This document shows positions 23,550 through 56,603 of a stretch of 64,000 bases of DNA, piece by piece. The notes below the pieces were generated by a model. That model was not told where the DNA came from and ran no database searches. It saw nothing but the letters and a program-made list of their open reading frames with translations. The stretch comes from Podarcis muralis (Eukaryota), in NCBI RefSeq assembly GCF_964188315.1, contig NC_135667.1, forward strand, positions 8,804,001 through 8,868,000, given 5' to 3'. How positions within the stretch are numbered: position 1 is the first letter of the stretch; each line of letters opens with the position of its first letter. Made by a program: the position numbers and the translations under genes.

Positions 23550-23588
23550 GGTTTTTGTATGAGATCTCATGGGATCCCTCTCACTGTG
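23550..23588 (-). other. Recombination signal sequence, 23-bp spacer, perfect consensus
   Basis: Minus strand CACAGTG (23588-23582), 23-nt spacer, ACAAAAACC (23558-23550), directly after TGT GCA GGA GA. Confidence 0.95.
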
Positions 23589-26500
23589 TCTCCTGCACAG
23601 TAATATAAGGCAGTGTCTTCTGCTTTTAAGTTGTTCATTTGAAGATAGAAGTTGGAGCCGCCCTTAGATGCTGTGAATCTCTCTCGGATGGCAGGAGAAT
23701 GATAACTCTTCCCAGAAGCTGTCCCATAATAGTGCACAAGCCATTCTAGTCTGTTCCCAGGTTTCTGTCTGACCCAATTCATCCAGGTGCTGCTAAGGTC
23801 AAACCCAGTGGTGGCACAAATCAATCTATGGGAGTCTCCAGGTTTCTTCAGTACTGGATCTGATTGAGTCAGAACTCCCTGTGAGAGGACATCTGATAGC
23901 AGGGGGGGGGGGAGAAACAAGTTAAAACAGAGAATCAACAACCTCCCAAAATCATACAAAACCCCACTTAAGTGGCAAAATGAATCAAAAGATAAAACTC
24001 AGCTATGGGAGACATGAATGGGGTGGTATCTACAAACATGGATAAGTCACAAAATCAAAACTTAACGACTGATGGAAGACTGCCTAAAACTTTCTTCGAA
24101 CTAACTGACAATATGGATTTGATTGACATATGGAGGACAAAAAACCCCTTAGGTAAAGAAGGAACTTTCTTTTCTGACGCTCATTTGTCATGGACACGAA
24201 TCGACCAGATATGGACAACTAGAGGGCTGGCACCTAAAACTAGAAAAGTGGAAATCTGCCCAAAAACCTGCTCCGACCATAACGCCTTGAAAGTGGAATT
24301 GAGACTTACTCCAACCGGTTCCTTCAGATGGAAAATGAATGACACCCTACTAAGAGATCAGGAGATTGTGAAGAAGGCCCAAAAAACTTTAAGAGACTAT
24401 TTTGAAATAAATTTGAATACCACGGTAGAAAAAAGAACAATCTGGGACGCAAGCAAAGCAGTTATGAGAGGGCTTCTGATACAACAAAATACGATCAAGA
24501 AAAGACTCTGGAATGAAAAAAAGGAGAAGATCTTGGAGAAAATAAGAGAAGGAGAGAAAAAACTGAGAACCAAACCAAAGTCGAAGGAGGTGCTGAGAGA
24601 AATTAAATTCCATCAAGCACAATATTCAAAATTGATAAATCAAGAGGTGGAATGGAAAATTAAACAAATGAAGCAAAGATCATTCGAATCAGCAAATAAA
24701 TGTGGAAAACTGCTAGCATGGCAGCTGAAAAAGAGACAAAAATTGAATACAGTTACAAACCTAGAGATTGAAGGGAGAATTGTTCAGAAACCAGAAGAAA
24801 TCAGAAAGTGTTTCCAGAGATATTTTAAAGAACTTTATGCACAGGGGCCACAGAGAGAGTTTGAAATAGATCAATTCTTAAAAACCAATGGACTATCAAA
24901 AATAACTCAGGAAAAGAGAACAATCCTGAACTGCAAAATAACGCAACAGGAAATTGAAGGTGCCATTCAGAATATGCAACTAGGCAAATCTCCAGGCCCT
25001 GATGGACTTACCTCCAAATATTATAAGACTTTGAAAGACTATCTGATACAACCTTTGATGGAGGTTTGTAACCAGATTATGGAGGGGAAGAAGGCCCCGG
25101 AGTCGTGGAAAGAAGCTTTCATCACATTGATTCCCAAAGTGGAAACTGAAAAGACCCAACTTAAAAACTACCGTCCCATCTCACTCCTAAATGTGGATTA
25201 CAAAATTTTTGCAGATATTCTGGCAAGTAGACTTAAAAAAGTACTGAATGAAGTAATCCATAAAGATCAGGCAGGCTTTCTCCCAGGAAGACATTTGTTT
25301 GATAATACCAGGAATATTATTGACATTTTGGAACTCTTGCAAACTAAAATCAATACAAGAGCAGTGTTAATTTTTATTGATGCGGAGAAAGCCTTTGACA
25401 ACATTTCTTGGATGTTCATGAAGAAAAACTTGGAAGGGATGGGAGTGGGACGGGGGTTTGAAAATGGAATAGAAGCAATCTATTCAGAGCAGAAAGCTAA
25501 ATTGATAGTGAACAATGTGGTGACAGAGGAGTTTAAAATTGAAAAAGGGACACGACAGGGGTGCCCCCTATCCCCTCTTTTATTTATTTCAGTCCTGGAG
25601 GTGCTTTTGAACATGATTAGGGAGGACCGGATGGTACAAGGAATACAGGTCGGAGTGAAACAATATAAACTGAAAGCATTTGCAGATGACTTGGTTTTAA
25701 CATTACAGGAGCCAGAATCTAGTACAAAAAGAGTTTTAGAACTGATTCAGGAATTTGGTCGGGTGGCGGGATTTAAGTTGAACAAGCAAAAAACTAAGGT
25801 TTTGGCTAAAAATTTGACATCTACAGAAACGGATGGGTTTCAGAGAGAGACAGGATTAAGTGTTGTTAAAAAAGTGAAATACCTGGGGGTTCATTTGTCT
25901 TCCAAAAATTTGAATCTATTTAAAGACAATTATGAAAAATGTTGGGTAGAAATCAAAAAAGATTTGGAAATTTGGTCAAGACTGAAACTTTCCTTGTTGG
26001 GTCGAATTGCAGCTATAAAAATGAATGTATTGCCGAAAATGTTATTTCTGTTTCAAGCCCTACAGATTGTGGACAGAGTGGAATGTTTTGGAAAGTGGCA
26101 GAAGGATATCTCCAAATTTGTCTGGCAGGGCAAAAAGCCCCGAATAAAGTTTAAAATACTAACTGACTCGAAAGAAAGAGGGGGGCTTGCCCTGCCAGAC
26201 TTGAGGTTGTATTATGAATCTGCAGCCTTCTGTTGGTTGAAGGACTGGTTTTTGTTGGAGAACACTGATGTCCTAGATCTGGAAGGGTTTGACAATGCTT
26301 TTGGTTGGCATGCATATTTGTGGTACGACAAGGTTAAAGTTCATAAATTGTTTAAAAACCATATTGTCAGAAGAGCAATATTTATGGTCTGGATGAAATA
26401 CAAAGACTTACTAGAGGGCAAGACCCCGAGGTGGCTATCACCGGTGGAGGCCAAGGCTCGAAAAAGACCCAACATGGAGGCCTACTGGCCGAAATACTGG

Positions 26501-27797
26501 GAAATAATTGAAAAAACTGGAGACAATTGGAGGTTGCAGAGCCAGGAGAAATTAAAAAATAAGGTGCGAGACTGGCTACACTATGCTCAAATTCAAGAGG
26601 TGTTTAAAATAGATAAAAAAGTTGGTTTCCAGGTGGAAAAATCGAAATTAGAGACGGAACTGTTAGAACCAAAAACTAAGATACTCTCTAGAATGTACAA
26701 CTTGCTGCTTAAATGGAACACACAGGATGAGACAGTAAAATCCGCCATGATAAAGTGGGCACAGGACATTGGGCACAACATTATTTTTGAGGACTGGGAA
26801 AGGTTATGGAACACCGGAATGAAGTTCACGGCATGTAATGCCTTGAAGGAAAACATTATGAAAATGATATACCGGTGGTACATGACCCCAGTCAAGCTTG
26901 CTAAGATATACCACTTGTCTGACAATAAATGCTGGAAATGTAAGGAGGCTGAAGGGACATTCTTTCACCTCTGGTGGACCTGCCCAAAAGTGAAGGCCTT
27001 CTGGGAAATGATTTACAATGAGCTAAAAAAGGTATTTAGGTATACCTTTCCCAAGAAACCAGAGGCCTTCCTCCTGGGCATGGTAGACCAGAAAGTGTTA
27101 AAGAAGGATAGAACTTTGTTTATGTATGCTACTACAGCAGCAAGAATTCTCATTGCAAAGCACTGGAAGACACCAGATTTACCCACGCTGGAAGAATGGC
27201 AGACGCAGTTGATGGACTACATGGAACTGGCTGAAATGACTGGCAGAATCCGAGATTTGGGAGAGGAAATAATGGAGGAGGACTGGAAAAAATTTAAGGA
27301 CTATTTGCGAAAACATTATAAGTTGTATGAATGTTAAGAATGTGTACGATTAGGAAACTATTGCTTCAGCAACTTGAATAGGTGAATTGGAACCTAAGTT
27401 ATAAGAAAGATGAGGTGGACAACATGAAGTAACCATACTATGTTTATTTTTAAGGCACAAATAACTGAGATACAGTATTTTGAATTTAGAAACATAGTAT
27501 TTGAAAGATACAGTAAGACATGAAATAAGGTAACAAATTGCTGATGTTTTAATTGCAAAGAACGCAGGATTCGGAAGATGTGGGGAAGTCTGGTTGGAAC
27601 GGTTAAAGTATTTTGGAAAGTTGGTTTCTATATATTTTTTTCTTTTTCTTATCTTCATTCTTTACTCTTTTCTGTAAATTTCTGACTATTTGAAAGAAAA
27701 TTTAATAAAATATTTAAAAAAAAACACAAAAGATAAAACTCAGCTCACATTGCAAGGAAGCAGCCAGCACAATGAGTACTGGCAAGAAGGACAGCGT
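23589..27797 (-). pseudogene. IGHV: Immunoglobulin heavy-chain-like V segment V1 (leader 27797-27749, V exon 23892-23589); probably non-functional (ACG start, L1 in intron)
   Basis: V exon open with C23, WVRQKPG and EDTALYYC hallmarks; leader (ACG)LSFLPVLIVLAASLQ then GTGAG donor; TATCAG acceptor; 23-RSS; upstream octamer-like motif. Confidence 0.85.
24005..27726 (+). mobile_element. 5'-truncated L1-clade LINE, open 1110-aa ORF2 (partial APE endonuclease, RT, CCHC)
   Basis: GDMN, RIDQIW and SDH endonuclease motifs; KSPGPDG; FADD; CWKC..H..W.C; AATAAA and A-rich tail; 19-bp TSD CAAAAGATAAAACTCAGCT at 23986-24004 and 27727-27745. Confidence 0.95.
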
Positions 27798-27880
27798 AGT
27801 GAAGGAATGGTCAGGATTTCAAGAGATCTGTGTAAAAATGGAGGTTTTGAGGTTTAAATAGGAACAAACGGCACCCTTAG

Positions 27881-27888
27881 CTTTGCAT
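27881..27888 (-). promoter_or_regulatory. Octamer-like motif ATGCAAAG of the V1 promoter
   Basis: About 85 bp upstream of the leader with a TATTTAAA box between; 1 mismatch to the IgH octamer ATGCAAAT; same 15-mer context upstream of V3. Confidence 0.65.
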
Positions 27889-28154
27889 AAATTGCTCAGC
27901 CCAAGGCAACACAGTATTATTGTGGTTCCAAGATCTCTCATGAGAATCAAAGAATCCCCTACAGCAATCTTTTCTCTTTTTTTGGTCTTGTTAGAAAGTG
28001 GAAGGAGTACTGGTTCTATGTTTTGTGGGGCCCTCAAGCACAATGGGCCCAGTGCTCCTATCCCCATTATCACACACTGACTCTCCCTCTGTCATTGGAG
28101 CCAATTCCCACCACTAACTGGTGACAGTAGTATGAGAAGGAAGACGTTCTTGGC

Positions 28155-28727: not shown

Positions 28728-30490
28728 TCTTCCATCATAGTAACTATCATACATGTGGAATCCAAGTGTAACATTGGGCAATATCTCAGATTTTTTGTTG
28801 ATTTCGTTTACGGTAAATGCCAAGGCAAGTATGTGCTGGTAGAATTTTGTTGCTACACTACCAACAGAATCAATGTTAGCATTTCATGAGAGAAGTACAC
28901 AATTCATAAAGTTTCAAAACTACTACATTGATCATTTTTGTATGTAAATTATTTAGGGTAAAAAACCCCTATTCTTTTATACATTAATGATTTTTTCTGA
29001 GTTAATAAAGTCCTTTCTTTTGGGGCCAAAAATAAGTTATGCTGTGTGTGACTCCTTATATTAATGCTTGATATTTTACCTGTTTAAGAAACAGTTCCCC
29101 TCATCCTCAAGATGTATATTTGCACGCACTAGGATTTCACCTCCATCAATCTGCTGATACACTCATCAGCAGGTTGATGAAGGTGAAATCCTAGTGGGTG
29201 CAGATATACAGTTTGAGGATGAGGGGATATAACAAAGAATTGTTGCACTCGGAGGACCCAAAGTCCTTGTGCAACAATACTTCATTATATACAGTAGCAG
29301 TAAATGTTTTGTTAATTTCACTTTGTTGTAAAGGAATCTACAGAAACTGGGGGAAATAGTTTTATCTCACTCACCATTTCTAGATACTTGACTATTACCT
29401 CCTAACATTTCTGTTAACCTTAAGAACAGAATGAAGTAACTCCCCCAAACTGTTCTTAATTAGGAAGATAGAAAAATGCCTTATTCTGAATCAAGCCATG
29501 AGTCTAGATCTACTTTTCAAGTCACATAGATTTGTCCTCAACTACGACTGTGACACACAGAAAAACCTCATAGCTATCATTGGTGGATGTGGCTCTGATA
29601 CCTCTTCCCTCATGGCAGACATTTTAGGTCTCTTCAAGGTTCCTCAGGTAGGACTTGTTAATGGGGTGCTGGGGTGTTTTCACAAACAACTCTATTCTCT
29701 TCTAATTTTTGTTGTGATTTTGTGCTTCAGGAGGAAGAAGGAAAACAATCCTCCAGTTGCATTACCAGGTTCTGAGAAAAATCAGTTAGGAAAGTACTTG
29801 ATGGCAGTTCTAACTGAACCAATAAACAGATTCAACAAATTTTGGTTGAATAAATAGATGCATGCTCATGGAGAATGCTCTCAATTTTCATTCCTATATC
29901 TGCACATTTTTTAAGAGAGAAAAGCTGGCATATATATTTCATTTCCACCAAAGGAGAGCAATACAAATGATGTCATTTCCTTCTTCCAATATATGGCAAA
30001 TGAATTACAGTGGTACCTCGCAAGACGAATGCCTCGCAAGACAAAAAACTCGCTAGACGAAAGGTTTTTCTGTTTGCGAGTTGCCTCGCAAGACAAATTT
30101 CCCTATGGGCTTGCTTTGCAAGACGAAAACGTCTCGCGACTTTGTTTCCTTTGTCTAAATAATAATTCGCAAGACGAAAAATTCGCTAGACGACAAAACT
30201 TGTGGAACGAATTAATTTCGTCTTGTGGGGCACCACTGTATATCAGTTCATTGTGACCCATGAAGTGTTTTGGGTGGAGGAGGATTGGTCTCTTTGTGGT
30301 CAACAATATTGATGCAGAATATTTCTTACACATTGAAGTATCATTAATTTTCCAGAATGGGATCTATTCAGCAAGCAGTGAAAAATTCACAGACTTACTC
30401 CATATGGACAGCATACATAAAATTAGTGCTATAACTCCATGGTACACTTTTGTACCATTCACATAACAATAAAACTAGGACATTTACCTG
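28728..30490. pseudogene. Rearranged V2R pseudogene: exon 2 5' half inverted (28857-28728, minus), exon 2 3' half on + (29503-29647), then decayed exon-3-like relic
   Basis: Minus strand gives [20 protein letters not shown]...[10 protein letters not shown]; + strand gives [10 protein letters not shown]...GLFKVPQ/GT; flanks align with gene 5 intron 1 and intron 2. Confidence 0.85.
30008..30238. mobile_element. Tc1/mariner-type MITE (second family)
   Basis: TIR CAGTGGTACCTCGCAAGACGAA / TTCGTCTTGTGGGGCACCACTG, TA on both sides, internal CGCAAGACGAA repeats. Confidence 0.8.
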
Positions 30491-31419: not shown

Positions 31420-31420
<1 letters not shown>

Positions 31421-31479
<59 letters not shown>

Positions 31480-32798: not shown

Positions 32799-35104
32799 AT
32801 GCTGCAGCTACTGATGATATATTTTCTGCTTCTGTTGGAATGTAAAGTAGACGCTATAAAATGCCCCCTGAATAAGCCTTCTGTTTTACATGAGTGGAAT
32901 CAGCAAGGTAGCCTCCTCATTGGTGGGATGGCTTCTCAGATAATCTACTATTTTAATGAACGACATTTTCATGAGCATCCTTCTAATGAGTTGTTTCAAT
33001 TTCCAAAGTAAGAAATTCTCTTCTTTCTGCATCTTTGTGTTTTGGAGATATATTTCAGGCTTTACAAAAAATATCACAATTGGGGAAAATTTGTAATACA
33101 AATCTTTGAGCAAATGAAAGGGTATGTAAAAGGGCTCTGAATAATCTCATAGTTTAACAGAATTGTTCTTGCTTTTTAAAAAATAAGATAAATATATGTG
33201 TTGTGATAGGACAATATCCAGGGCACAGGGGTATTTCTGATGGTATTTGTCTCAAACATCAGTGCTAAAAAGGATCTGGTAAAGCTGATCCACTTTGCTG
33301 AGCATTTACTATTCACATATTAATAAGCGAGAGATGTCAATGTAATCATGAGATCTCCAATTTTTGTTGCCAGGCAAACAAGTTGCTTGTGCCATACTCA
33401 TGTGTTATCAACCATTGTATTAGCCATTGCATATATGTTGCCATAAGCACATGTTGAAGTGAGTGGTTAGCTCAGTTGGTTAGAAAGTGGTGCTGATAAT
33501 GCCAAGGTTGTGGGTTCAATCCCAGTCTGGGCAAGCTGCATATTCCTGCGTTGAAGGGGTTGGACGAGATTATCTTCCATGTACCTTCCAACTCTACAAT
33601 TCTGTGATTCAATTATAATGCTCAGGGAAAGCATGGATTGCTCTTAATTGCTAAGGATGCTGTACTAATACTGAATTAAGAAGGGCTGTAAGACTTGGCA
33701 TTTTCGTTTCCAGGTAGGGCTAGAAATGTATCTGCCTGATAGCCTTATGTTCCATCCACTGAAAATGCTTGTTGTTCAGAAGCCAAAGACCTGTATTGGA
33801 GGGAGCTAGACTAGAAGATCCTCCAGGTCCCTTCCAACTCAACAGTTCTATGATTCTATGTATTCTGTCGGCAGCATGGTGACAAAATTCTACCAGCATG
33901 TCCTTGCCTTGGCATTTGCCATAAATGAGATCAATGAGAACCCCAAGATTTTACCCAATGCTACACTTGGATTCCATATTCATGACAGCTACTATGATGC
34001 ACGAGTGACCTATCTTGCTACTCTAGATATGCTCTTCAAATCACATATATTTGTCCCCAACTACAACTGTGATACACGGAAAAAAGTCATAGCTGTCATT
34101 GGTGGACTTGGTTCTGATACCTCTTCCCTTATGGCGGACATTTTAGGTCTCTTCAAGATACCACAGGTAAGATGTATGAATGGGGTGTTGGTATTTTCAG
34201 GGAAAACAAACTATTGTCTTGTGTCGTTCTTACAGTGATTTTGTCCTTCAGATAGAGGGGAGAATATGTGTGTGAGTGAGAAATCTCCTAATAGACTTAC
34301 CAGATACAGTGGTACCTCGGGTTAAGTACTTAATTCGTTCTGGAGGTCCGTACTTAACCTGAATCTGTTCTTAACCTGAAGCACCACTTTAGCTAATGGG
34401 GCCTCCTGCTGCTGCCGTGCCGCCGGAGCACAATTTCTGTTCTCATCCTGAAGCAAAGTTCTTAACCTGAAGCACTATTTCTGGGTTAGCAGAGTCTGTA
34501 ACCTGAAGCGTATATAACCTGAAGCGTATGTAACCTGAGGTACCATTGTATTGATAAAATCCTGTTTGATGAATCATTGACTCTTATTGACCCAAGACAT
34601 TGCCCCAAAACATATGTTTTGAATAAAACATAGACATTTTCACAGACAAAGCTCCCAATCTGCCTGCCCAATATATGCACTTTTAAAAACTTTCATTTCC
34701 TGCACAGAAGGAGGATAACATTCTGGTTCTTTCTTTTTTCAGCATGGTACCCAAGGGATACTATCAAGATGTAGCCTTCATTATTTAGAGACGTAAACTA
34801 GCACATTTCAATAAAGACTTCCCCTCCAGAACAAAGGGCAAACTGACCTTCCACATATATTAATAAATTGGTTTTATAAATACAGTGGAGCAAAAGCATA
34901 TCCCACTCATCCACAAGAGTAAATTTAGCAGCCTAGTTAATAGTAAGTATATCATTGTTTGTAAGCAATTTATGTATTTAATCCAGGAGAGGTCTGTTTG
35001 ACAAGACATTGAAGATAGTGATAATAAATTTATGTCTTGGATCCTCATACGAGGGAGAGCTTAGCTGATAGCCTGCTAGTATATATAAATTCAATAAATA
35101 ATAA

Positions 35105-35150
<46 letters not shown>

Positions 35151-37308
35151 GTGCAATATATCTTTAACTTCACTGGGCTCTCAAATAATAATTTTTGTAG
35201 TTTGGGACACTGTTAAATGCCACATACAAGTAAACAGGAGGGATAAAATGAAGCCACAGAGTTGTCAATGATTTTTTTAAAAGACCTGCAGGAAGCAACT
35301 TTGTAAAATAAAGCTCCACAAAAAATGTCATTTTATATAATGGATAGTAAAACAACTGTTTTAAAACAGTTTTAAAAACAACTGTACTTTAACCAGTTAA
35401 TACATCAAAGGCATCAAAAAGAAGCAAGTAAGATACTACTAGAATGAACAAGAACTTGTAAGTACAAATAGCATTACAGCAGATTAAAGGCAACCTAAGT
35501 TTGAATATTATCATTAAACATATGATTGCAAAATATTACAAAAATACAAAATTTTACATATATTTATTAGGTTGATTTATACAAATTCTACCCATTCAAA
35601 GTCTGGAGGGGGTACACCCCCACACTTCTTATAAATCATTATTCTTACAACTTTTAAAATAATGAAATCTATTTTGAAACCATTCACCAAAATAACATTC
35701 TTCAAATAATGAAAAAGAAAACTTAAGGTTGTAAAGGTACAAGCTATTCCAATTTCACAGAATGAATCTGTTCATACCCTAGAAGATGGAGAACTTGACA
35801 TTAGTGCTATAGCCCCATGTTCCATCCACTGAAAATAAAAGCCAATGCATTTATCATTGCAAGAGAGTCTTCAGCAATGTCTGTGCATTTTCTTGTAGCT
35901 CACCTATGGCTCCTTTCCCACAGAGGAAAGCGATACAGGTCACATCCATTCCTACTACAACATGGTCCCAAATGAAGCCTATCAGTACAAGGGGATTATC
36001 AGTTTACTGAGGCATTTCAGGTGGAACTGGGTGGGGCTCTTTGTTGTAGATGATGAGAGTGGAGGATATTTTCTGAAGACATTGGAGCCATTACTTTCCC
36101 AGCATGGTATCTGTTCAGCTTTCACGCAAAGAATCCCACCGGAAGCACGTTTGGATGACATTGACCACATTATCGACATAATCTCACACAATTATGTAGA
36201 TTTCACAGATAACAAAGCCAATACATTCATCATCTATGGAGAGTCTATGACAATGGTATGGCTGAGAAATATTATGTTTGTACGAGATCCTGAAAGTAAG
36301 GAAACTGCATCATTTAGAAAGGTGTGGATCATGACAACTCAAATTGATTTATTATTATCAGGCACTCAAAAGGGTTGGGATCTTCAGTTGTTCCAAGGTT
36401 CAATTGCCTTTACAATTCACTCACAGTATGTTCCAGCATTCACGGAATATCTTCAGAAAGTTAGACCTTACTGGACTGAAGGAGATGGATTTGTCAATGA
36501 TTTTTGGGAGCAAGCATTTGATTGTTCATTTACAAATCCCGATGGACCGGCAAATGACATTGAAAGATGTACTGGGAAGGAGAAGCTGGAAAGTCTTCCT
36601 GGTCCTCAGTTTGAGATGCTCCTGAGTGGCCACAGCTACAGTATCTATAATGCAGTGTATGCCGTAACTCATGCATTGCATGTTGTTTACTCAGCTAGAA
36701 CCAAGCACAGAGCAATGGCTGGTTGGGAGAAATTTGAACTTCAAGATCTGCAGCCATGGCAGGTAATTTCATCACACCTCTTTTATAATAATATTTATTT
36801 TTCATACATAAACATAACGGAAAAAGAAAAAGTTGACAATAATAAAGGAGAAAGAATAAAAAAGAAAAAAAGAAAAAAGAATATGAAACATACAATACAA
36901 CAGATCATCACTTGACTAACAATTAATTAATTAAAATCCATCTTCATAAACATATTATTTGGCTTCCTCAAATATCTTCCATCTGAATTTCTTAGTAATT
37001 ATATATAGCAGTTTCCAATATCATTATTTCATAAACCATATCACAGTCATAATCATATTTCCTTACTTTTCTTTTTGTACATTTTCTTCTTTATATATTT
37101 AATCCCAATTTAATCCTAGCCCTAATTGATTCTTTCAAGGGATTACATATCTTTAATGTTATAATATTTATTCAAATAGTCTTTGAATTTCTTCCAATCT
37201 TCTTGGTGTTCCTTTTCTTCCTGGTCACGGATTCTCCCGGTGAGATCAGCCAGCTCCATAAACTCCATCATCTTCACCTGCCATTCTTCTACCGTTTCTC
37301 TCTCTCAA

Positions 37309-37370
<62 letters not shown>

Positions 37371-40300: not shown

Positions 40301-41204
40301 TAAAGCACTTGTCTTGCAAAGAGCAAGCACCAAAGCCTCCTCTAAGCACATTCTTGTTCAAGGTCGAAGTCTGGTCCTACGATCTTTAATCTCTACAGCT
40401 GCAAAGCTCCCCAGTTCGACTCTAATAACAGTTTCACAAGCTCCCTCTAGGGGAAACAATTTCTATTTGTATCCATTTTTTTTTTTTTTTAAGGCAGATC
40501 TAGCAACAAAGTTTTCCTTTTTCGGATATTTTATTCCTTTTAAATGCGAAAGGGAACAATGGAATCAATATGCTTCTCTTCTTTTGACTATCTGTCAAAA
40601 ACGTTTGTCCATGGTCAATGAACTTCCCCAAAACGTCTGTCCTGACACCCCGCTCCCAGGTTCAAGACGGTGGAAATTTACCTTTCTTTACTCTCTCTTC
40701 TGCAGGTTTAGACAGTCTAAAAAAGGTTCCCCCCTCTTCTCCTGCTTCCCAGGGGGGTTCAGTAATTTTAAATGATGAAAATTTAATCCTTTACAAGCGG
40801 CTTTCCAGACTCTAGCTTGCCGTGTCTTTGCTTCAATCTATTTACAAAAGCGGAAGGCGGACTTCCTGTTTAGACCTTCCCGCTTCGGTGCCAAATTAAG
40901 AAATTTCATAGTCCAATTTTCCGTTCTACTCACGGGCAGTTGTTTAAAATCCAATTGTCCACAGGAAAAAGTCAGTGCTCTCTGGCAACAGCAACATTAG
41001 TTACTAATTACTCCTATCCTAAATTCTGTTCATGGATAGGGCCTTCCCCTTTCTATTTGTAATGAACACTGTCTCCCTGGTAATCAGAAGAAAAAGAAGG
41101 AAGGAGAAAAGTTCTGCTGTTATGACTGTGCTTTATGCCCAGAAGGGGAGATTTCAAACCAGACAGGTGGGTAATGCAGTATTCCATTTCTTTCATTGTA
41201 CAGC

Positions 41205-41254
<50 letters not shown>

Positions 41255-45280: not shown

Positions 45281-46138
45281 ATATTAGTGTCTGTTAAGTG
45301 TGAATACTACTGTATTGAACTGATTGCTCAATATATTTGGGATTTGGGGATATGGACCATTAGATCTTCAAAATATGCCCTTTCAAAATGTCAACAAGCT
45401 TCTTTCCAAAGTTTCCCTCTTAACCCAGAATAGGGAAAAGACGACACATTTGGTAAGTTTACTTGCAAACACTTTAAAGGTAAGGTTCATGTGCTTCATA
45501 AATATTGCTCAGGGAGTAAAACCTAGCTTAGTCAGAAGTGGTGAAGGTTCCTAAATAATTTGTATAGGACAAAGGCTTTCAAATGTTTTGATTCCACAGC
45601 TCCCTTGACCAACTGCATTCATTCTGTGGGGCTCAGGACCCCAGTTATAACACCCTTTGCCTGCAGAGCTGGCAGCCTCTCACCCCCTCAATCACATATC
45701 TTGCAATACACATACACAATAACTTATATGTTTGTTTCAAAATTTCCTGCTTAAGCTGGAGCCCAAACTCTCAAGAAGTAATTATCTCCCTCTGCAAACA
45801 TTATAATTACTATAATTTTGTCAATCTTTCACAGCTGCAGATGTTTTCCAGAAGACACAGGCTAGCCATGAAAATGCAAGCTTGAAGTAGGTATAAATAA
45901 CCCCCAGTGTATGTAAGAACTGGGAATAGGAGCAAACTGCAGTCTGGACTCTGTCAGTTTTACCTCTATCAGTTTCCCCTTTATTGATATTATTAGCCAG
46001 ACTTAAATTAGGAGCATTGCTTTTCAGTGACTTACATCACTATCTTGCTTGCTGCTTGCTGTAGTTGGTGACTGCCCAGTTCAGCCTGTTTCAGTCAGGC
46101 TGTTTCTTTGAATGAACAAAAGACAGCTTGCATCTAGA

Positions 46139-49100
46139 ATGGTGGTCTATCTTCTCTTTCTAAAGACATGTGAATTAGATACTGGTCTGTGTCCCATGAA
46201 TGATCCCCTCCCTGTTCCACATGAGTGGTACCAGCAAGGTGAAATCCTCATTGGTGGGGTTGCTTCTCAGATCCTGTATCATTTTACAAAACCTGATTTC
46301 AGAGAACATCCTTCGGAAGAGTTATATAACTTTCCAGAGTAAGGAAAACTCCCCATCTCACCCCCTAGTTCCTGCTCCATCTTGCTGTTTTCCTTGATCT
46401 CCTTCTGTAGGCACTGTAAGACAGAGCTATTCTGCCTGGCCTTCAATTTGAATTAACCTGATCCTCTATTCCCTTTTCCCTTTCCTCTTCTATGAAGAAA
46501 CCCTTTCTGGGACCCCACATTTAAATTCTTCCATGGTCTCCTTGCTGGCCCTAGTAGTACCAACTTGGCCAGTTAGCCCTGGTGATCATTTGATGCCTAC
46601 TGACTGGTTTTTTTTTTCCTTTCCCAAATGACCCCGGAATTTTAGAATTTTATTGATATTGATGCTGCATTTTATGTTGTATTTTATGCTGTTTTATGCT
46701 GTTTTTAAGTTGCATTTTAATCAATGTTTTATATTTGCTGTTAGCAGCCCTGATCCCGGTTTTTAAACCTGGAAGAGTGGGGTATAAATAAATTTTTATT
46801 ATTGTTGTTGTTGTTGTTGTTGTTGTTGTTATCATCATCATCACACACACCCAATTACAGTTTATTGACGTGTGATGATGCTCAAGGAAAGGGTCTGTAG
46901 ACTTGACCTAACATTGGAGAATAGTTGTCCTTTTCAAATTCCTGAAGAAATCCCTTATGTTTTCCATGAAATTTGCTTCATTCTCTTTAGAAAAACAAAA
47001 ACAGAACCCTGCTTAATGTTTTTGTGTAAGGTTTTTCTCCTTCTTTTGCTTTTCCTGAGTAAAACATGATCACACAAAAAATGTTGATAGGAGTGGTTCA
47101 GTGTGACGAGAGAAAGCACCTTCAGAAACCTTCAGAGGCTTGTCCACAACACAGGCATTCTAACTTTTCATACATTTTTCCTTTGATGTTTCTGTACTGG
47201 GAAACCTACTTTCTCATATAAGCCTTACACATTCTACTAAATGTAAAGAAAAAAAGACTTTGTTCTTCTGGGAGACCTTTCTATATTGGAAAGCAGAGTG
47301 AAAGATTTAGGTATGCATGCACTGATGTATCAAATAGTTCTGGCTTAGAGTCAACAGGAAAGGTATTGGGGGAAATAAGCAAAATGAAAGTAAGATGTTA
47401 AAACCCAACAATAGAAGGTTTCAAAAAATGTGCAAAAGTGCAGGAAAGCTCCAGAATAAAAAAGGGGGAAGGAACTAAAGCCATTACAATTTTGCATGCT
47501 TACAAAAAGGAATTTGTGAAGGGTCCAGAATGCTCAATAGTATTTCAGATTGATCCACTTTGATCCACTTTCTACAGTATTAAGCTTTTGCAGGATTAAT
47601 GAATAGAACTAGCACTGGACTGAGGAGGCATTTATTGGCTCAGAAAAACCATTAATGTGTAAAAGGATAGTCTTTAAACCTAAACAATTTACATGCAGAA
47701 ATTGCAAAAATTTTAGTTTCAAAACTTTATGAATTTCATGATTCAAAATAACAATGTCAATTCTGTTGGCAGAGTGCTGATAAAATTCTACCAGGACATC
47801 CTTTCCCTGGCATTTGCTGTCAAGGAGATCAACAAAAGTTCCAAGATTTTGCCCAATGTCACACTTGGATTCCATATCTATGACAGCTACTATGATGGAA
47901 GACTGACCTATCGGACAACTCTAGATCTGCTCTTCAAATCACACAGATTTGTCCTCAACTATCATTGTGACACACAGAAAAACCTCATAGCTGTCATTGG
48001 TGGACGTGACATTGATACCTCTTCCCTTATGGAAGACATTTTAGGTCTCTTCAAGATTCCACAGGTAGGAGCTGTGAATGGAGTGTTGTGGATTCTCACA
48101 AACTGCTCTCTTCCCGTGTCATGGTCATTGTGATTTTGTGTCCCAGGAAGGGGGGTATACTCCAGTTGCATTACCAGGCCTTGAGAAAATTCCACAAGAA
48201 ATGTACTTGGTGGTAGCTGTCACTGAACCAATGAAATAATTCAACAAATAATGGTTGAATAAAGAGGCACATGCTGAGAGAGAATGCTGGCAATCTTCAT
48301 ATCCTATATCTGCACATTTTAGAAAGAAAAGCTAACGTATACTTCATTACCACTAAAGGATTATGATACAGTTCTTTGCATTTTCCAAATGGTGGTCCAT
48401 GAATCTCATCAACACATTGTGACTAACAGCTCTTGAAGTATTTGGGTTGGATGCAAGCTAGGCCCTTTCCTGAGAAAAATAGTGGTGAATAATATTTATT
48501 GAACAATATAGGACTGTTGATTCTGCAGAGTGGCGATTGTTCAGCCATAACCCAAATTTTCCCACAAGTACGAATATTGATAGTGTACAGGTACATTAAA
48601 TTATCAGTATACCACCATGGTACACTTACATACAATTCATATGTAAAAAAAAACAACCTAGCACATTTGTCATCTATGGAAAGTCTTTAGGCTTGTTTTA
48701 ATTGAGATACAGAGGCTGAAAGTGATGAGTTCTGGAAAGAGAGGAAAAAACAATTGTTTGGAAATTAGAAGAATGGACTGTGAACCAATGCTTGGAGAAG
48801 CATGTGACTGTACATATTATATTTTAATTAATCTATAAATATAAGTTTATGCAAGTAAAATTCCTGAATGTTAATGTCTGGACATTAGTTTAATTTCCAA
48901 AGGAGGGTGTCAGTCATATATATGATTTGAGCTTCTTAGCTGCATTTTTACTACCTTTACTCCAGCAATAACTACCTGTACATTTTCTTTTAGCTCACCT
49001 ATGGCTCCTTCCCTCCCGAGGAGAGTGATACTAGTAGAGTCCATTCTTTTTACCACATGGTCCCAAATGAAGTTCTTCAGTACACAGGGCTTGTCAGCTT

Positions 49101-52100
49101 GCTTAAGCATTTTCAGTGGACCTGGGTGGGGCTCTTTGCTCCAGATGATAGCAGTGCAGATTTTTTCACCCAGAAACTGGAATCATTGTTTTCCCAGCAT
49201 GGAATCTGTTTAGCTTTCACCAAAAAAATTAAACAAATAGCCCATTTTGATGATTATAGCAGACTTGGTGACATAATCGACAGAATCTTCATAAATTTAA
49301 GAGATGACAAAGTCAATGCACGGATCATCTATGGAGACTCTATGACACTTGTATGGCTGAGAACCATTATTTTTATAGGCGAATTTGAAAAGAGGTGGGA
49401 TGCATTTAAAAAGGTGTGGATCACCACAAGCCAGATTGACTTCATATTAACAGGCCATCAGAGGAATGCGGGGGACCTTCAGGTGTTCCATGGTGCAATT
49501 GCCTTTACAGTTCACTCAAAAGAGATTCTAGGATTCAAGGAATTTGTTCAGACAGTCAAGCCTCACTGGGCAGAAGAAGATGAATTTCTTAAAGACATCT
49601 GGGAGCAAGCATTTGACTGTTCATTTACAAATCCTGAAGAGTCTACAAATGACACTGGAGCATGTACTGGGGAAGAGAAATGGGAGAGTCTGCCTACATC
49701 TCTGTTTGAAATGCATATGTCTGGCCACAGCTACAGTATCTATAATGCAGTTCATGCTGTTGCTCATGCTTTGCATGATGTTTACACAGCTACAATGAAG
49801 AACCCAGTAATGGTGACTAGGAAAAGAGTTGAACTTCAGGATCTGAGGCCATGGCTGGTAATGTCTCCACACCAAAGTAATTTAAACCTATTATTTCTAG
49901 GTCTGACCAGAAGCCATTTTCTCATCCACAAATAGCTGATGGGATTGAGTTGCATACCTAAATAATTAGTACTGTTTTGTGGGTTTACGTTGCCTCTTAG
50001 ATCTGAAGAATTAAATGAATTTAAGTCATCTACAATGCAAAAGAAACTCTCTATTTACCATGTAATAAACATAGCTTATTTTTTCAAATGGAAAGTATTT
50101 TTATTAAAGCTTGAAAAACAGAAAAGAATATATGTAAAAGTTGACATCAAGTACCAAGTATTTTAGCTTAAAATCTCAAAGAGAGAAAAGAAAGGAAGGA
50201 AGAAAAGGAAAGCCTTCCAATTATCCATCTATTAGCTATATATAGACTTATGCAAAACACATTTCCCAGAATAATGTCCAACTCTTCTCTTTTCCATAAA
50301 CCAACCTTTTTTCCAGTCTTCAAAAACCAGATATCACAAATTCATTTCCCCTTTTGTGCAAAAAGTCTGAAATGGGTTCCTAATCATTAATATATATGAA
50401 CAATGAATTTTCTCTAATTAAACACGTCAACTTTGTCATCTCGGCCAAATCCAGTAATTTCAATAACCATGCTTCCATAGTAGGCATTAATAAGTTAATC
50501 ATAACATATGTTAAATATAGCTTGATGCTATACTTGCTCTTAGTTGGACTGCAGGCATCCCTTTGACCCCTTTATTTTTCTGTTTGTCTCTCCATTAGTT
50601 CTTCCCATTTCTTCACGGTATATCATTCAATAACTCAGTGGGAGAAACAATCTCTTTTGATGCTAAAAGGGAAATGGGAGGTGGATTTGACATTAACAAC
50701 ATAGTCACATTTCCAAATAAGTCCTTTCAGAGAGTGAAAATTGGAAGAGTGGGTCCTGATGGTCATGAAGGAAAAGAATTCATCATTAACGAAGACCAGA
50801 TTGAGTGGCACAGTGGTTTTAATCAGGTGTGAATAATTGGATATCCTTAGTGGGGGTCAACTCTGCTCTCCAAATGGACCAATGGGGTATTGGTGATTCT
50901 TTTCTTAGCTGCTTACAGCTATGCCTTATCAGAATGTGAGAGAGTCTTCCTCAAGTTGGGGAACACTGCTCTAATATTTTCTACCTACTACAAATATTTG
51001 CCATCTGCTAAAATAAAATAGATATAGCATTTAGATACCAAATATCTCCATAGCCTTGCTCCCAGTTTTGAAGCATAGATCATGGTCTAGCAATTGGCCA
51101 TCACTATTTCAGTGGCCATATTCTGAATATTCCATTTACTAATCTGAGCATCAGAAACTGACCAATATTATTTCCAGCTTGTCCATCCCTAATCTCTAAT
51201 TTATGGACAGGTACTTCCCATCTCTGTGTGTAACGAACATTGTCAGCCTGGTTATCAGAAGAAAAAGAAGGAAGTGCGGTTTTTTTGCTGCTACGATTGT
51301 GTTTTTTGCCCAGAAGGCAAGATTTCAAACCAGATGGGTAGGTGACATATATCTGCAACACTTTCACCATAGCGGCGTAATTCAAATTCTTTTATCAGCT
51401 GATTAAGTTTGGAAGTAGGGATGGAGGGGATATTTGATTCAGTTTGCATTTGAAGGCAAAAACGGAATTCACTTAAAAATAAATAAATCATAGTACTTAA
51501 ACCAAAACTTCAAAAATTGAGGGAAGGGCCACCAGCTTCTGAAGTAGTTTGTTCCACTGTTGAGCAGTTTACTGTCAGGAAGTTTAGTTGGAATTTATTT
51601 TGCTGTAATTTGAATCAGTTGCTTCTGGTCCAACCTACCGGAGCAGTAGAAAACAAACTTGTTCCATCTTCCTTGTGATAGCCCTTGAAATATTTGAAGA
51701 TGACTATATTATCATTTCTCAGACCTTTCTTCTCTAGTCCAAAAATACCAGACTCTTTTAACCCTTCCTCATAAGGCACTTGGTTCCCAGGTCCTTGATC
51801 ATCTTGGTCACCCTCCTCTGCACACATTCCAGCTTGTCAACATCCTTCTTAAATTATGGCAATTAGAACTGGATACAGCATTCCAGGTGTTGTCTAACTA
51901 AGGCAAAATAGAGTGGTACCATTCCTTCTCTTGATCTGGGCAATATACTTCTGTTGATGCAGCCTAGAATAGCATTAGGGTTTTTTACTGCTGCATCACA
52001 CTGTTGACTCATGTTACGCTTGTGGTCTACTAAGACCCCCTTGATCCTTTTCATATGTGTCCCCCCTCTTATATTTGTGCATCTGTTTATTTCTGCCTAA

Positions 52101-53338
52101 GTATAGAACCATATATTTGTCTGTATTGAAATTCCTTATGTAAGCTTTAACTTATGAGTAAATACAAATAGGATTGCACTTTCACATTACAAATCAAGCA
52201 GCACTTCTTGGCATACCCACTTGGAAACAGCAGTCATTGAACTAATGTGTTTCAGTTGCTTATATATTTTAGGATAGCTCAATGCAGTATTTATAGGAGT
52301 TTAAACACAGCAGAAATGCTTGACATTCCTTCCATACACATAAGTGGCATACATGTAATGGACTATTTTCATGCAATGATTGTCTGCAAGCAAAGAGAAA
52401 GTGGGACTGATATGGGCCTTATTTCTTTTTTTCCAGATATGACTGACTGTTTCAAATGCCCAGAAGATCAGTATCCAAGCAGTGACCAGACTCAATGCCT
52501 CCCCAAAACTATAACATTTCTTTCCTATGAAGAACCTTTAGGGATCTGTTTAGCCTCAGTTGCTGTTTCTTTTTCCCTCATCACAGCTTCCGTGTTACAA
52601 ATTTTTATTAAGCACAAAGATACCCCCATTGTCAAAGCTAACAACCGGGACCTCACATACATTCTCCTCATTTCCCTTCTGCTCTGCTTCCTCTCTTCAT
52701 TGCTATTTATTGGACAACCTGGGAAAGCAAGCTGCCTCCTCCGACAACCAGCTTTTGGCATCATCTTCTCTGTGGCTGTTTCTTGTGTTTTGGCCAAAAC
52801 TGCCATGGTTTCTCTAGCGTTTATAGCCACAAAACCTGGATCTAGGGTGAGGAAGTGGGTGGGGAAAAAACAGGCCTATTCAATTTTACTTTCTTGTTCT
52901 CTTATTCAAGCAAGTCTTTGCATTGCGTGGCTCTTAACCACGCCCCCATTCCCTGATTTAGATAAGTATTCGGTATCTCAAAAGATCATTGTGCAATGTA
53001 ATGAAGGGTCAGTTGCCATTTTCTACACTGTCTTGGGCTATATGGGCCTCTTGGCAATCATCAGCTTCATTGTGGCATTCCTAGTCCGTAAACTACCTGA
53101 CAGTTTTAATGAAGCCAAGTTTATCACCTTCAGCATGTTGCTCTTTTGCAGTGTTTGGTTGTCCTTTGTTCCAACCTACCTGAGCACAAGAGGAAAAGAC
53201 ATGGTAGCTGTGGAGATCTTCTCTATATTATCTTCCACTGCTGGGCTCCTGGGTTGCATATTTTCCCCTAAATGCTACATTATTCTGTTAAGGCCTGAGT
53301 TGAACAAGAGGGAACAGCTTATAAGGAAAACGAAGTGA
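46139..53338 (+). CDS. Vomeronasal type-2 receptor gene 5, 6 exons, about 870 aa (alternative upstream ATG at 46112), apparently intact
   Basis: Exons 46139-46338, 47773-48064, 48994-49857, 50599-50826, 51211-51337, 52437-53338; GT-AG, 2613 nt in frame. Confidence 0.9.
51535..52130 (-). mobile_element. Decayed CR1 LINE 3' fragment in intron 5 of gene 5
   Basis: Translations [27 protein letters not shown] and IFKYFKG...RSN are typical of CR1 ORF2 C-termini. Confidence 0.75.
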
Positions 53339-53735
53339 AACACATTTATTTCTTATTTAGTTTTGTAAATTTTTTTAAAACACTGCCTATCTATCTATTT
53401 ATCTATCTATGACTGAAATGAAATTAAGTATTACTTGCTTCACCTTAAGAAAATAACAGGAATTATGTGGGTTTTACTAAATGACGCTTGGTGTCCCTTC
53501 CAACTCTGCCATTCTATGATTCCATGAAATGTAAATAGTGGGTCTGAAAAGCCATGCTGAAGAGATACTGGCTCTGGTAATATATGAGATATGATATAAT
53601 ATACAAATCAACATATGAGATGCATGAATAGGAGAAGTGAACGGCTGAAATGTTCCATACAACTGATAAGCATTATTAGTTCCACTGAAGCCTCCTGGTG
53701 GACAAAATGAGAAGATGGCTCCTACAATTCCAAGA

Positions 53736-53763
53736 CCTTTTTGCTTTAGGGTTACTCACAGTG
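53736..53763 (-). other. Probable recombination signal sequence with 12-bp spacer
   Basis: Minus strand CACTGTG (53763-53757), AGTAACCCTAAA (12 nt), GCAAAAAGG (53744-53736; 6/9 to consensus, A-tract intact); no nonamer at the 23-bp position. Confidence 0.7.
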
Positions 53764-54266
53764 GGTCTCTCTCCTCATACAGTAATACATGGCAGTGTCT
53801 TCTGGCTTCAGATTTTTCATTTGCATGTAGAAATTACTGCCATCCTTTGAGACTGTAAAGCGACCTTGGATGTTGGGAGAATAGTAGTTTGTCACAGATG
53901 GTTTCCAATAGCTGATCAGCCACTCAGGGGCCTTCCCAGGTTCCTGCCTAAGCCAAGACATCCACCACTGGTCAGCAATGTCCATGGTGCATGTCAGTTG
54001 GACAGATTCTCCAGGTTGCTTCACCATAGCCATGGACTGGATTATAACAACTTGAAGCTGGGCAACTGCAGGAAGAAGGAAAGAAGATGCAGGGAATAGA
54101 AATGTCATTTCCATCCATTTATGTTATTGTGATTTGAAAAATTGTTGGAAATTCGAAACATAAGCCAATGTTTTAAAAGTTCTCAGCCTATGGGATGTGG
54201 AGAGGAACACATACCTTCTAACACCACCAAAAGGACAACCCATTGATACCAAGAGAACATTTTCAT
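53764..54266 (-). CDS. Intact VH-like V segment V2 (leader 54266-54215, V exon 54065-53764)
   Basis: ATG leader MKMFSWYQWVVLLVVLE, GTATGT donor, pyrimidine tract plus CAG acceptor, 149-nt intron; V exon open with LTC, WLRQEPGKAPEW, RFTVSKD, EDTAMYYC. Confidence 0.88.
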
Positions 54267-54387
54267 GCTATGCTCAAGAAAAGAGCTCACTGATCAAATA
54301 CTAATCTTGACACTTTAGGAGTCTGTAGGATTGCCTGAGTGTTCTCAATTTTGACAGTGAGTGCTTTATGAAGGAAGCAGGTTCAAT

Positions 54388-54395
54388 ATTTGCAT
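54388..54395 (-). promoter_or_regulatory. Perfect IgH-type octamer ATGCAAAT upstream of V2
   Basis: ATTTGCAT on +, about 120 bp upstream of the leader ATG, in the IgH-promoter orientation. Confidence 0.75.
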
Positions 54396-55226
54396 ATGTC
54401 CCTAATAAAAGGCGGTTTTCTGTTGATAGGGAACAAGTCTGAGAAGCAACGTTTATTTTGCCTGTAAAAGGTCCCAGGTTCAATCCCCAATATCTCCAGC
54501 TAGGGCTGAGAGAGACCTGAACCTGAAACCCTTGAGTTCCACAGCCAGTCAGTGTAGACAGAGGACTTATCCACACATCCTCTTGTCCCGCTTCTTCTTC
54601 CCTCCCCCAGAGTAAAGCTGCTCTTTAACATGCAGTCGAAGCAAAGAGCAATTTGGGTTTTCTCCAGGTTGATATTTGCTCCAATTTAGTACTAAAGAGC
54701 AGACTTTCCCTGGGAAAGAAGTGGGACAAGAGGAAAACCACTCAAACCTCTGCCTAGAAAATGGACTTCAAGTGGAAAACCACTCAGGCCTGTGTTTCAT
54801 AGGGATGGGGCAAGTGGAAGTGTGGATGAGCCCAATATTCTGTTAGATGAACCAATAGGAGTCCTTACTTTCTTAAACACCAGGTTGGTTTGCAACCAGT
54901 GTGGACATGAGCTTCTCAGTTACTGAGGGCAATTACTGTAATCAAAGCAGACATTTTGAAGTAATAAGGGAAACACAATGTAAGGACAAAAAGAAAGAAA
55001 TAATGAGATGTGTTTTGATTTAATATTTTTTCCCCATTAGGAACAGAATTTAAAATATTGTGTATTAAAGGAGTCTGGGTGAGAATCATTAGGTAACCCT
55101 AAAGCAGTCATTGGCCAATGTTGAGTGTGGATAATTTTTTTCTTGGTTCAGCAGTTTCTGTCTTGTGATTTTCTGGTTCTCTGGTGGCGCTTCTTTAGAA
55201 TTTTTGCCAAAAATCATGCAGCGAAA

Positions 55227-55649
55227 TGTTTTTGTCCGAGATCTAACGGGATCTGTCTCACTGCATATCTTTTCCAGCAGTACACTGATGTGTGTTCTGC
55301 TTTGAGGTTGTTCATGTGAAGTCAGAAGTTGGAGCCACTCTTATAAACTGTGAAATGCCCCTGGACTGCAGGGGAATTACTGTACCCAGAATGAATATCA
55401 TAATAATACAGGAGCCATTTCAGGCCTTTGCCAGGTTGCCGCTTGACTCAGTATATTGCAAAGCCACTAATATCAAACCTGGTGATGATTCAGTTCAGTT
55501 TATGGGATTCTCCAGGTTTCTTCAATACTGAATCTGACTGAGTCAAAACCATCTGTGAGTAGACACCTGTAGCGGGCAAAGAAACCAACAATAGGGAGAA
55601 CAACAACTAAGAGTGGGAAACAAGTTAAAACGGAGAAGCAACATCCCAC

Positions 55650-55698
<49 letters not shown>

Positions 55699-56485
55699 TT
55701 TTATTTATATCCCACCCTCCCCAGCCGAATCCGGGCTCAGGGTGGCTAACAACAATCAAATAATCAAACAGTCAAATAATCACACATTCTAAAAATATTT
55801 CATTATAAAATTAATTAAAATCAAATTGATGGCAACCGATTAAGCAAAATTCTGTGCAGGTTGCCAGAGGAGGGAGTCAGGCTGCGCCCTGACCAAAGGC
55901 CTGGTGGAACAACTCTGTCTTGCAGGCCCTGCGGAAAGATGTCAGGTCCCGCAGGGCCCTAGTCTCTTGTGACAGAGCATTCCACCAGATTGGAGCCGCA
56001 GCCGAGAAGGCTCTAGTTGAGGCCAGCCTAACCTCTCTGAGGCCTGGGACCTTGAGGATGTTATTATTTGCAGACCGTAGGTTTCTCTGTGGGGCATACC
56101 AGGAGAGGCGGTCCCGTAGGTACGAGGGTCCTAGGCCGTATAGGGCTTTAAAGGTTAAAGCCAGCACCTTAAACCTGATCCTGTACTCCACCGGGAGCCA
56201 GTGCAGCTGGTATAGTACTGGATGAATGTGATCTCGCAGTGAAGACCCCATAAGGAGTCTAGCCGCGGCATTCTGCACCCGCTGGAGTTTCTGGGTCAGT
56301 CTCAAGGGCAGCTCCACGTAGAGCGAGTTACAATAATCCAGTCTGGAGGTGACCGTCGCATGGATCACAGTGGCTAGGTCTTCAAAAAACCAAATTGATA
56401 GCTAGAAAAATAAAATAAGTCTAAAGTTTAACACACATGGTGAAGAGGCACCCAGTGCAATTAATTTTGGCAAGAAAGATGGTGC
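55227..56485 (-). pseudogene. IGHV: IGHV-like pseudogene V3 (degenerate 23-RSS 55265-55227, V exon 55566-55266, leader relic about 56485-56437)
   Basis: QMVLTQSDSVLKKPGESHKLN*...Y*VKRQPGKGLKWL...SNF*LHMNNLKAE with three TGA stops; TGCAGTG-23-ACAAAAACA; leader homologous to V1 but lacking ATG. Confidence 0.85.
55650..56380 (-). mobile_element. 5'-truncated L2-clade LINE in the leader-V intron of V3
   Basis: ORF SRLDYCNSLY..LP..LQRVQNAAARL typical of L2 ORF2 C-terminus; (ATT)n tail. Confidence 0.8.
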
Positions 56486-56595
56486 AGCAGAGGGGTTGGT
56501 GGTCTGGATCTCAAAGTGACTCTGTAAGCGCTGCCACAGATCTGTGGTGGGTGGGAGACTTTGAGAGTTTAAGAAGGATTTGAGAGTACTCCTGG

Positions 56596-56603
56596 CTTTG
56601 CAT
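56596..56603 (-). promoter_or_regulatory. Octamer-like motif ATGCAAAG of the V3 promoter
   Basis: GCTTTGCATAAATTG on +, identical to 27880-27894 upstream of V1. Confidence 0.6.

Follow-up and report, generated by a model that had tools for sequence, protein, structure and literature searches.

Immunoglobulin heavy-chain variable segments interleaved with vomeronasal V2R genes in a probable stretch of the wall-lizard IGH locus

Foreign gene families inside the V arrays of antigen-receptor loci are a well-known general phenomenon. In mammals, ADAM6 is a nonimmunoglobulin gene that lies between IGHV and IGHD, and olfactory receptor (OR) genes are found at the V end of the TRA/TRD locus. Trypsinogen genes reportedly sit inside the TRB locus of both human and mouse, an observation that is said to go back to Rowen et al. 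in 1996. The IGH locus of Anolis carolinensis has been described as a 610-kb segment that contains many VH clans and has duplicated recently only within its V region (bioRxiv 10.1101/002618), two features in which the locus described here resembles it; the text of that description makes no mention of vomeronasal or olfactory genes.

Here, we analyzed a 64-kb stretch of wall-lizard (Podarcis muralis) DNA, referred to below as the window. It is probably a variable-region stretch of the IGH locus in which minus-strand VH segments alternate with complete plus-strand V2R genes. As in the reported trypsinogen case, an unrelated tandem family, in the lizard presumably expressed in another tissue, is placed in a rearranging locus among V segments of which at least one is functional. 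V(D)J joining reportedly removes the trypsinogen guests as a side effect, a fate that we infer for the lizard V2Rs. The lizard locus differs from TRB in being IGH, in having as its guest a chemoreceptor family on the opposite strand, and in that the guests locally outnumber the V segments (5 genes versus 3 V segments in 64 kb). The resemblance to TRA/TRD is that monogenically expressed chemosensory receptor genes are mixed with distal V segments, but mammals have few ORs, placed at the edge of the locus, whereas complete V2Rs alternate with V segments in the lizard. ADAM6 likewise is a functional, unrelated gene tolerated inside IGH, yet cases of that type involve single genes rather than an interleaved multigene family. 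A literature search, conducted outside subscription immunology journals, found no published description of an IGH/V2R mosaic, in keeping with the original prediction, which knew of none.

The window contains three minus-strand VH segments among five stop-free V2R genes of the six-exon type, one of them partial (V2R-F), and three V2R fragments. The V2R genes and fragments are as follows.

627-6554, plus strand: V2R-A, complete, with six exons at about 627-743, 1409-1699, 2719-3582, 3901-4119, 4351-4473, and 5649-6554
15087-21013, plus strand: V2R-B, six stop-free exons, recently copied in tandem from V2R-A (94% amino-acid identity over the 7TM exon)
22987-23127, plus strand: V2R exon-2 fragment, a relic (tblastn)
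28728-28847, minus strand: V2R exon-2 fragment (tblastn)
29501-29650, plus strand: V2R exon-2 fragment (tblastn)
32868-43946, plus strand: V2R-D, six exons, stop-free
46112-53338, plus strand: V2R-E, six exons including the signal-peptide exon, stop-free
57989-64000, plus strand: V2R-F, exons 1-5, stop-free so far, extending past the window end

The plus-strand genes are V2Rs (class C GPCRs), as their domain set and six-exon tandem structure show, and the named proteins closest to them are V2Rs as well. V2R-A, found to be stop-free by tblastn with P0046 and an exon-1 peptide, matches the Pfam families 7tm_3 (E 1e-84) and ANF_receptor (E 8e-19). The Pfam record of P0046 comprises ANF_receptor, NCD3G, and 7tm_3, and V2R exon 5 aligns within its NCD3G portion. 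Two of the genes (V2R-D and V2R-E) lie between the first and second V segments (V1 and V2), and V2R-F lies beyond the third (V3). The foreign family is therefore embedded, with intact V2R frames standing between V segments of which V2 is in use. This arrangement bears out the original prediction that two multigene families share one array on opposite strands.

Searches by tblastn with V1 and V2 peptides recovered exactly three V segments in the window, all on the minus strand.

23550-23588, minus strand: V1 recombination signal, CACAGTG-23-ACAAAAACC, an exact pattern match with a chance expectation of 0
23589-23892, minus strand: V1 V exon, whose VH-type reading frame is intact and shows the Cys, Trp, and YYC landmarks
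24004-27726, plus strand: L1-like LINE (~3.7 kb) inside the V1 leader intron, with a 1110-aa reverse-transcriptase ORF at 24005-27337
27749-27797, minus strand: V1 leader exon, with ACG at the position of the relatives' start ATG
27881-27888, minus strand: V1 octamer variant ATGCAAAG
53736-53744 and 53757-53763, minus strand: V2 recombination signal, nonamer GCAAAAAGG and heptamer CACTGTG, respectively, with a 12-bp spacer
53764-54065, minus strand: V2 V exon
54066-54214, minus strand: V2 leader intron, spliced in RNA
54215-54266, minus strand: V2 leader exon
54388-54395, minus strand: V2 canonical promoter octamer ATGCAAAT, lying 122 bases 5' of the ATG
55222-56603, minus strand: V3 pseudogene, with a V exon at about 55266-55569 that contains three stops
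55227-55235 and 55259-55265, minus strand: V3 nonamer and mutated heptamer TGCAGTG, respectively, with a 23-bp spacer
about 55680-56400: repeat insertion in the V3 leader intron
56596-56603, minus strand: V3 octamer variant

The segments are of heavy-chain type. Both V1 and V2 match the Pfam V-set family (E 1e-14 and 5e-17, respectively) and show the Cys, Trp, and YYC landmarks in translation. Every one of the top 60 PDB matches of the two is a VH, nanobody, or scFv heavy domain, and one reptile relative of these segments carries the name "Ig heavy chain V-III region." With 52% amino-acid identity, V1 and V2 fall into separate VH families; V1 and V3 are 71% alike. Within the window we found no D, J, or C segments, and an Rfam search of 21-58.5 kb at the gathering threshold returned zero matches.

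The three segments are not equally preserved. It had been predicted that all three would carry a leader, an octamer, and a recombination signal sequence (RSS); three minus-strand VH-like segments are indeed there, but the canonical octamer is present only in V2, and the V1 leader has no ATG. V1 has a perfect 23-bp-spacer signal, and it departs from the usual split leader with a short intron and octamer promoter through the ACG in place of ATG and the LINE in its intron. V3, which had been described as a V segment with all of these elements, is a dead pseudogene: the V-set Cys, Trp, and YYC landmarks are gone, in addition to the three stops and the mutated heptamer. Only 1 of the 3 segments, V2, is clearly functional, and it has the split leader, the short intron, and the octamer promoter together. 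Spacers measure 23 bp in V1 and in V3 (with its dead heptamer) and 12 bp in V2, for which 23 bp had been expected. IGHV segments do not typically have an RSS with a 12-bp spacer.

The V2 leader intron (149 nt, GT..AG) is removed in RNA, and the resulting joint (54065/54215) was seen in 4 RNA runs. V2 RNA contigs from four runs end at 53766-53768, which is 2-4 bases before the V coding end, and two contigs continue past the break with 29-32 extra bases that do not align to the germline. In runs expressing V2, RNA depth was zero over the V2 RSS flank, V2R-E exon 6, and V3. The RNA variants at 53812, 53837, and 54272 match the alleles in an independent genomic contig of the V2 locus (L001, covering 53555-54508 only), so we attribute the transcripts to V2 itself rather than to a paralogue. 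A protein word-index search with V2 returned two genomic contigs only and zero transcripts. V2 is in use, and it probably undergoes V(D)J joining to a presumed IGH partner.

These transcripts bear on whether the V segments could be an orphon cluster, that is, relics that duplication carried from the genuine IGH locus to a V2R array, where they do not rearrange. Such a history would suit the pseudogene state of V3, the lost start codon and LINE-bearing intron of V1, and a window free of D, J, and C segments. Yet V2 yields spliced transcripts, and in four RNA runs these part from the germline sequence at the coding end. Because V2 is spliced and its transcripts break at the coding end, we read the window as working IGH V-region DNA, and the orphon reading appears very unlikely.

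The joining mode of V2 is a separate matter. V2 may belong to a nonclassical system, for example as a heavy-chain gene that is D-less or has V and D fused in the germline and so rearranges straight to a 23-RSS partner. An 80%-identical relative (L002) has kept the 12-bp spacing together with the nonamer GCAAAAAG despite a different spacer sequence, and the germline stub of V2 after the Cys is long (CMRRET), both of which point this way. Against it, the domain is plainly of VH type and sits among ordinary 23-RSS VH segments. We regard the nonclassical reading as a possibility, tentatively held and short of an even chance. It would alter how V2 joins, not the mosaic.

An assembly artefact, with two loci collapsed or misjoined, could also produce such a mixture; multigene arrays are hard to assemble, and none of the same-species contigs that we fetched spans a V2R/V junction. 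The window assembly, however, contains no N, and it has three separate V/V2R junctions. The LINE in the V1 intron is bounded by an intact 18-bp target-site duplication (23986-24003 and 27727-27744), which indicates locally coherent sequence. Moreover, the same kind of junction occurs without a gap in an independent assembly of Podarcis lilfordi, where eight VH segments are followed 0.8 kb on by a V2R on the opposite strand, tail to tail as in the window. We therefore consider a misassembly extremely improbable. The P. lilfordi V2R beside the VH segments groups with V2R-A/B (support 86/90). We considered it as a cross-family orthologue of V2R-A/B and dropped this assignment, since it comes from a congener and, being 75% identical, is a paralogue.

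The layout of the window follows a repeating geometry. The 3' end of a V2R faces a V recombination signal at a distance of 0.4-2.5 kb, and a V promoter faces the 5' end of the next V2R at a distance of 1.4-5 kb. The tail-to-tail part of this geometry recurs in P. lilfordi, and a CTCF-like motif lies about 30-40 bp past the nonamer of many V segments. Both observations are compatible with a functional coupling in which interleaving has been selected, for example through common chromatin control of two stochastic systems that each express one receptor per cell, or with a variant in which V2Rs serve as spacers or insulators and thereby influence which VH segments are used in loop-extrusion scanning. 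But CTCF patterns are about as frequent in the window as chance predicts (8 versus 6.85 expected), and we saw no coexpression: V2R-E, only 0.4 kb from V2, is silent in the RNA runs that express V2. Words from V2R-E exon 6 scored 0.00 in the indexed RNA runs of the species, a value that is not proof of nonexpression.

Duplication history also speaks against coupling. Self-comparison of the window yielded no coduplicated V-plus-V2R unit. The only recent duplication, 1-6583 versus 14464-21049 (87-96% identical), covers a V2R gene (V2R-A/B) and is free of any V segment. This result, along with the divergence of V1 from V3 and V2, leaves the predicted coamplification of both families by tandem duplication unsupported. 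No fused V-set/V2R gene models were present among 150 representative proteins.

Mixing of V segments and V2Rs was likewise absent from V2R loci of a gecko assembly (32 kb), a lacertid-sized chromosome (27 kb), a colubrid (35 kb), and Varanus komodoensis (46 and 98 kb, with gaps), all of which were picked by protein similarity and not by synteny, as well as from a cobra VH contig (27.6 kb), also not picked by synteny. These loci give no support to conservation of the mixture outside wall lizards, though they do not refute it. Functional coupling of the VH and V2R families is not supported either, and we judge it very unlikely in its two forms taken together. That interleaving is selected and not merely tolerated, whether V2Rs and their flanks shape recombinase reach or V-linked CTCF-like elements partition V2R choice, seems quite improbable.

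Under the preferred reading of the window as IGH V-region DNA, VH segments and V2Rs would be neighbors rather than partners. V2 would be joined by V(D)J recombination and expressed in presumably lymphoid RNA, where V2R-E stays silent, and the V2R open frames would be kept, presumably for vomeronasal neurons. The mixture most likely reflects two fast-duplicating, tissue-restricted tandem families expanding in one AT-rich, repeat-rich, duplication-prone region. If D, J, and C segments follow the V segments in the minus-strand direction, any B cell rearranging V2 or a V located farther out would excise the intervening V2Rs from that allele, probably as a harmless by-product. Such a somatic loss, also part of the original prediction, would follow from the deletional mode of standard V(D)J joining.

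On this reading, an entire family of chemoreceptor genes can reside within an antibody heavy-chain V region that still works, which would add IGH and V2Rs to the precedents set by trypsinogen in TRB and ORs in TRA. The locus would offer a natural system for asking how large blocks of foreign genes are accommodated in loop-extrusion scanning and locus contraction, whether B cells somatically lose pheromone-receptor genes, and whether duplication-prone, AT-rich neighborhoods collect "environment-facing" gene families. It also carries a warning for annotators, as squamate IGHV segments may be scattered through chemoreceptor arrays and mislabeled by automatic annotation. The VH genes of P. lilfordi have been automatically named "M1-specific T cell receptor beta chain-like."

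Two multigene families are interleaved in the window. The plus-strand genes matched the Pfam families 7tm_3 (E = 1e-84) and ANF_receptor, and their exons aligned one after another, free of stop codons, with an 847-amino-acid vomeronasal type-2 receptor (V2R) model protein (P0046); exon 1 was located by a separate second search. Five V2R genes and three isolated exon-2 fragments were identified in sequence that has no gaps and a G+C content of about 40%. As the original prediction of three VH-like segments among plus-strand V2R genes had it, a tblastn search with the intact V1 and V2 peptides as queries gave three V segments and no more, each of them on the minus strand.

V2R genes, V2R fragments, and the V exon of V1 in the window
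627-6554, plus strand: V2R-A, by exon alignment to the V2R model
15087-21013, plus strand: V2R-B, by exon alignment to the V2R model
22987-23127, 28728-28847, and 29501-29650: V2R exon-2 fragments
23589-23892, minus strand: V exon of V1, reading frame intact
32868-43946, plus strand: V2R-D, by exon alignment to the V2R model
46112-53338, plus strand: V2R-E, by exon alignment to the V2R model
57989 to the window end, where it is truncated, plus strand: V2R-F, by exon alignment to the V2R model

V1 and V2 both match Pfam V-set, and every one of their best solved-structure matches was a V domain of an antibody heavy chain or a nanobody. The closest database relatives were reptile Ig-like V proteins, one of which is named a heavy-chain V-III region. 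The layout repeats a rightward V2R gene followed by a leftward V segment. Facing each other, the V2R 3' end and the V signal are separated by 2.5 kb (V2R-B and V1) or 0.4 kb (V2R-E and V2), while the V promoter and the 5' end of the next V2R gene are separated by 1.4 kb (V3 and V2R-F) or about 5 kb (V1 and V2R-D).

The further expectation that duplication would amplify both families together was not supported. The sole young tandem duplication (1-6583 versus 14464-21049, 87 to 96% identical) copies a whole V2R gene and contains no V segment, and V1 is only 71% alike to V3 and, at the protein level, 52% alike to V2. We found no evidence for functional coupling of the VH and V2R families. Further duplicated upstream pieces lie at 8262-10426 and 12890-15049, with a minus-strand LINE (10709-12973) between them. 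Within intron 3 of V2R-F, a 435-amino-acid open reading frame (60873-62468) that weakly matches GIY-YIG (E = 6.5e-4) lies between 300-bp direct repeats sharing 98% identity; this reading frame may be a remnant of a Penelope-like element.

All three V segments had been credited with a leader exon, an octamer, and a recombination signal (RSS), a description that fits V2 but only parts of the others. V2 is intact: it keeps the conserved Cys, Trp, and YYC, its octamer is canonical, and an intron of 149 nt separates the V exon from a leader exon of 52 nt. V1 has an RSS of textbook form (CACAGTG-23-ACAAAAACC), but its octamer is a variant (ATGCAAAG) and its leader exon has ACG where relatives in Podarcis lilfordi have the start ATG. 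The V1 leader intron also holds a young insertion (23986-27744 including its target-site duplications), a 3.7-kb L1-like LINE with an intact 1,110-amino-acid reverse transcriptase reading frame, a poly-A tail, and perfect 18-bp target-site duplications. In V3, the first Cys is gone, the V exon contains three stops, and the heptamer is damaged, starting with TG rather than CA; the V3 leader intron contains a repeat.

Contigs from four same-species RNA runs, aligned to 52200-56700, established that V2 is expressed. The leader intron was spliced in all four runs (joint 54065/54215, GT..AG on the minus strand). The contigs span the leader and V exon and end at 53766-53768, 2 to 4 bases short of the coding end (53764); in two runs, 29 to 32 extra bases past the break had no match to the window. 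Depth was zero across the RSS flank (53559-53709), V2R-E exon 6, and the V3 exon in the four runs. Since a sterile (germline) transcript would read through the RSS, a break at the coding end is the pattern of V(D)J-joined messages. Nor do the messages come from a paralogue, because the bases by which the RNA departs from the window at 53812, 53837, and 54272 equal the alleles of an independent genomic contig of the V2 locus itself (L001), which is 97.9% identical and collinear through the RSS. V2 is thus expressed and, as read from the contig break, recombined, with a putative J/C joining partner. Of the V2-to-C message that had been proposed as a check, the spliced leader and the departure from germline at the coding end were seen. 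At the 5' end of V2, 30 bases of one contig (run X17) past 54318 did not align; adapter sequence or chimerism may account for them. High-copy repeats at 55673-56427 (V3 leader intron) and 53408-53558 had summed depths in the thousands in all four runs, a signal from repeats elsewhere in the genome and not V3 expression.

The V2R gene adjoining V2 is silent in RNA that expresses V2. RNA runs from the same two studies as the V2-expressing runs contained 0.00 of the V2R-E exon-6 words, and a further search of the index located this exon in no RNA run.

The V2 RSS has a 12-bp spacer (CACTGTG-12-GCAAAAAGG; 53736-53763). L002 (1470-1530), a relative in a different species with 80% identity, has the same spacing and nonamer (GCAAAAAG), with a changed spacer sequence. 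Following the Cys, V2 also carries a long stretch of germline sequence (CMRRET; signal and stub within 53736-53780). Together with expression, the 12-bp signal and the stub fit a heavy-chain V family, V-D-fused in the germline or D-less, that would join directly to a 23-RSS partner.

The mosaic could in principle be an assembly artefact. However, an independent P. lilfordi assembly, reached via two of its VH proteins (OX395138.1, 44.936-44.963 Mb), has eight tandem VH segments followed after 0.8 kb by an opposite-strand V2R (exons 2 to 6) in gap-free sequence. We read this locus as the congener's copy of the same region, which argues well against an artefact and says nothing for deep conservation. 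The VH-adjacent V2R clusters with V2R-A/B (support 86/90) and, at 75% identity, is a paralogue. It (L006 15805-22210, minus strand) is missing from the called genes listed at the locus, and the VH genes there (L006/L008, 44.94 Mb) are auto-annotated "M1-specific T cell receptor beta chain-like." Neither the V2R loci sampled from a gecko assembly, Varanus, and a colubrid nor a cobra VH contig, all picked by similarity rather than synteny, contained a VH/V2R mixture, and deep conservation is not supported.

No description of such a mosaic had been known beforehand, and a full-text literature search, with subscription immunology journals mostly outside its scope, found no description of V2R genes within an IGH locus, including in a paper on reptile V repertoires with an account of the Anolis IGH locus. 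Antigen-receptor V arrays housing foreign gene families are well known (trypsinogen in TRB, OR in TRA/TRD, and ADAM6 in IGH), which makes the window mosaic a further case of that phenomenon.

If the minus strand has D, J, and C segments downstream, joining of V2 or a more distal V by the standard deletional mechanism of V(D)J recombination would excise V2R-A to V2R-E. The loss would be limited to that allele in that B cell, and it would be without consequence because B cells make no use of V2R genes. The mosaic probably originated as two fast-duplicating, tissue-restricted families grew in one AT-rich, repeat-rich neighborhood. The broader notion that environment-facing genes form AT-rich tandem arrays is treated in bioRxiv 10.1101/2022.07.13.499775.

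The window V segments have a weaker CTCF-like motif (23500-23520, 53690-53702, and 55175-55190), and the count of CTCF-like patterns across the window is at chance level. About 30 to 40 bp beyond the nonamer, a CTCF-like motif is found in most P. lilfordi V segments (L008, e.g., CCAGAGGGGGCAGC) and in L002 (CCTCCAGGGGGCAG), and it resembles the CTCF sites that adjoin the RSS of proximal VH genes in the mouse.
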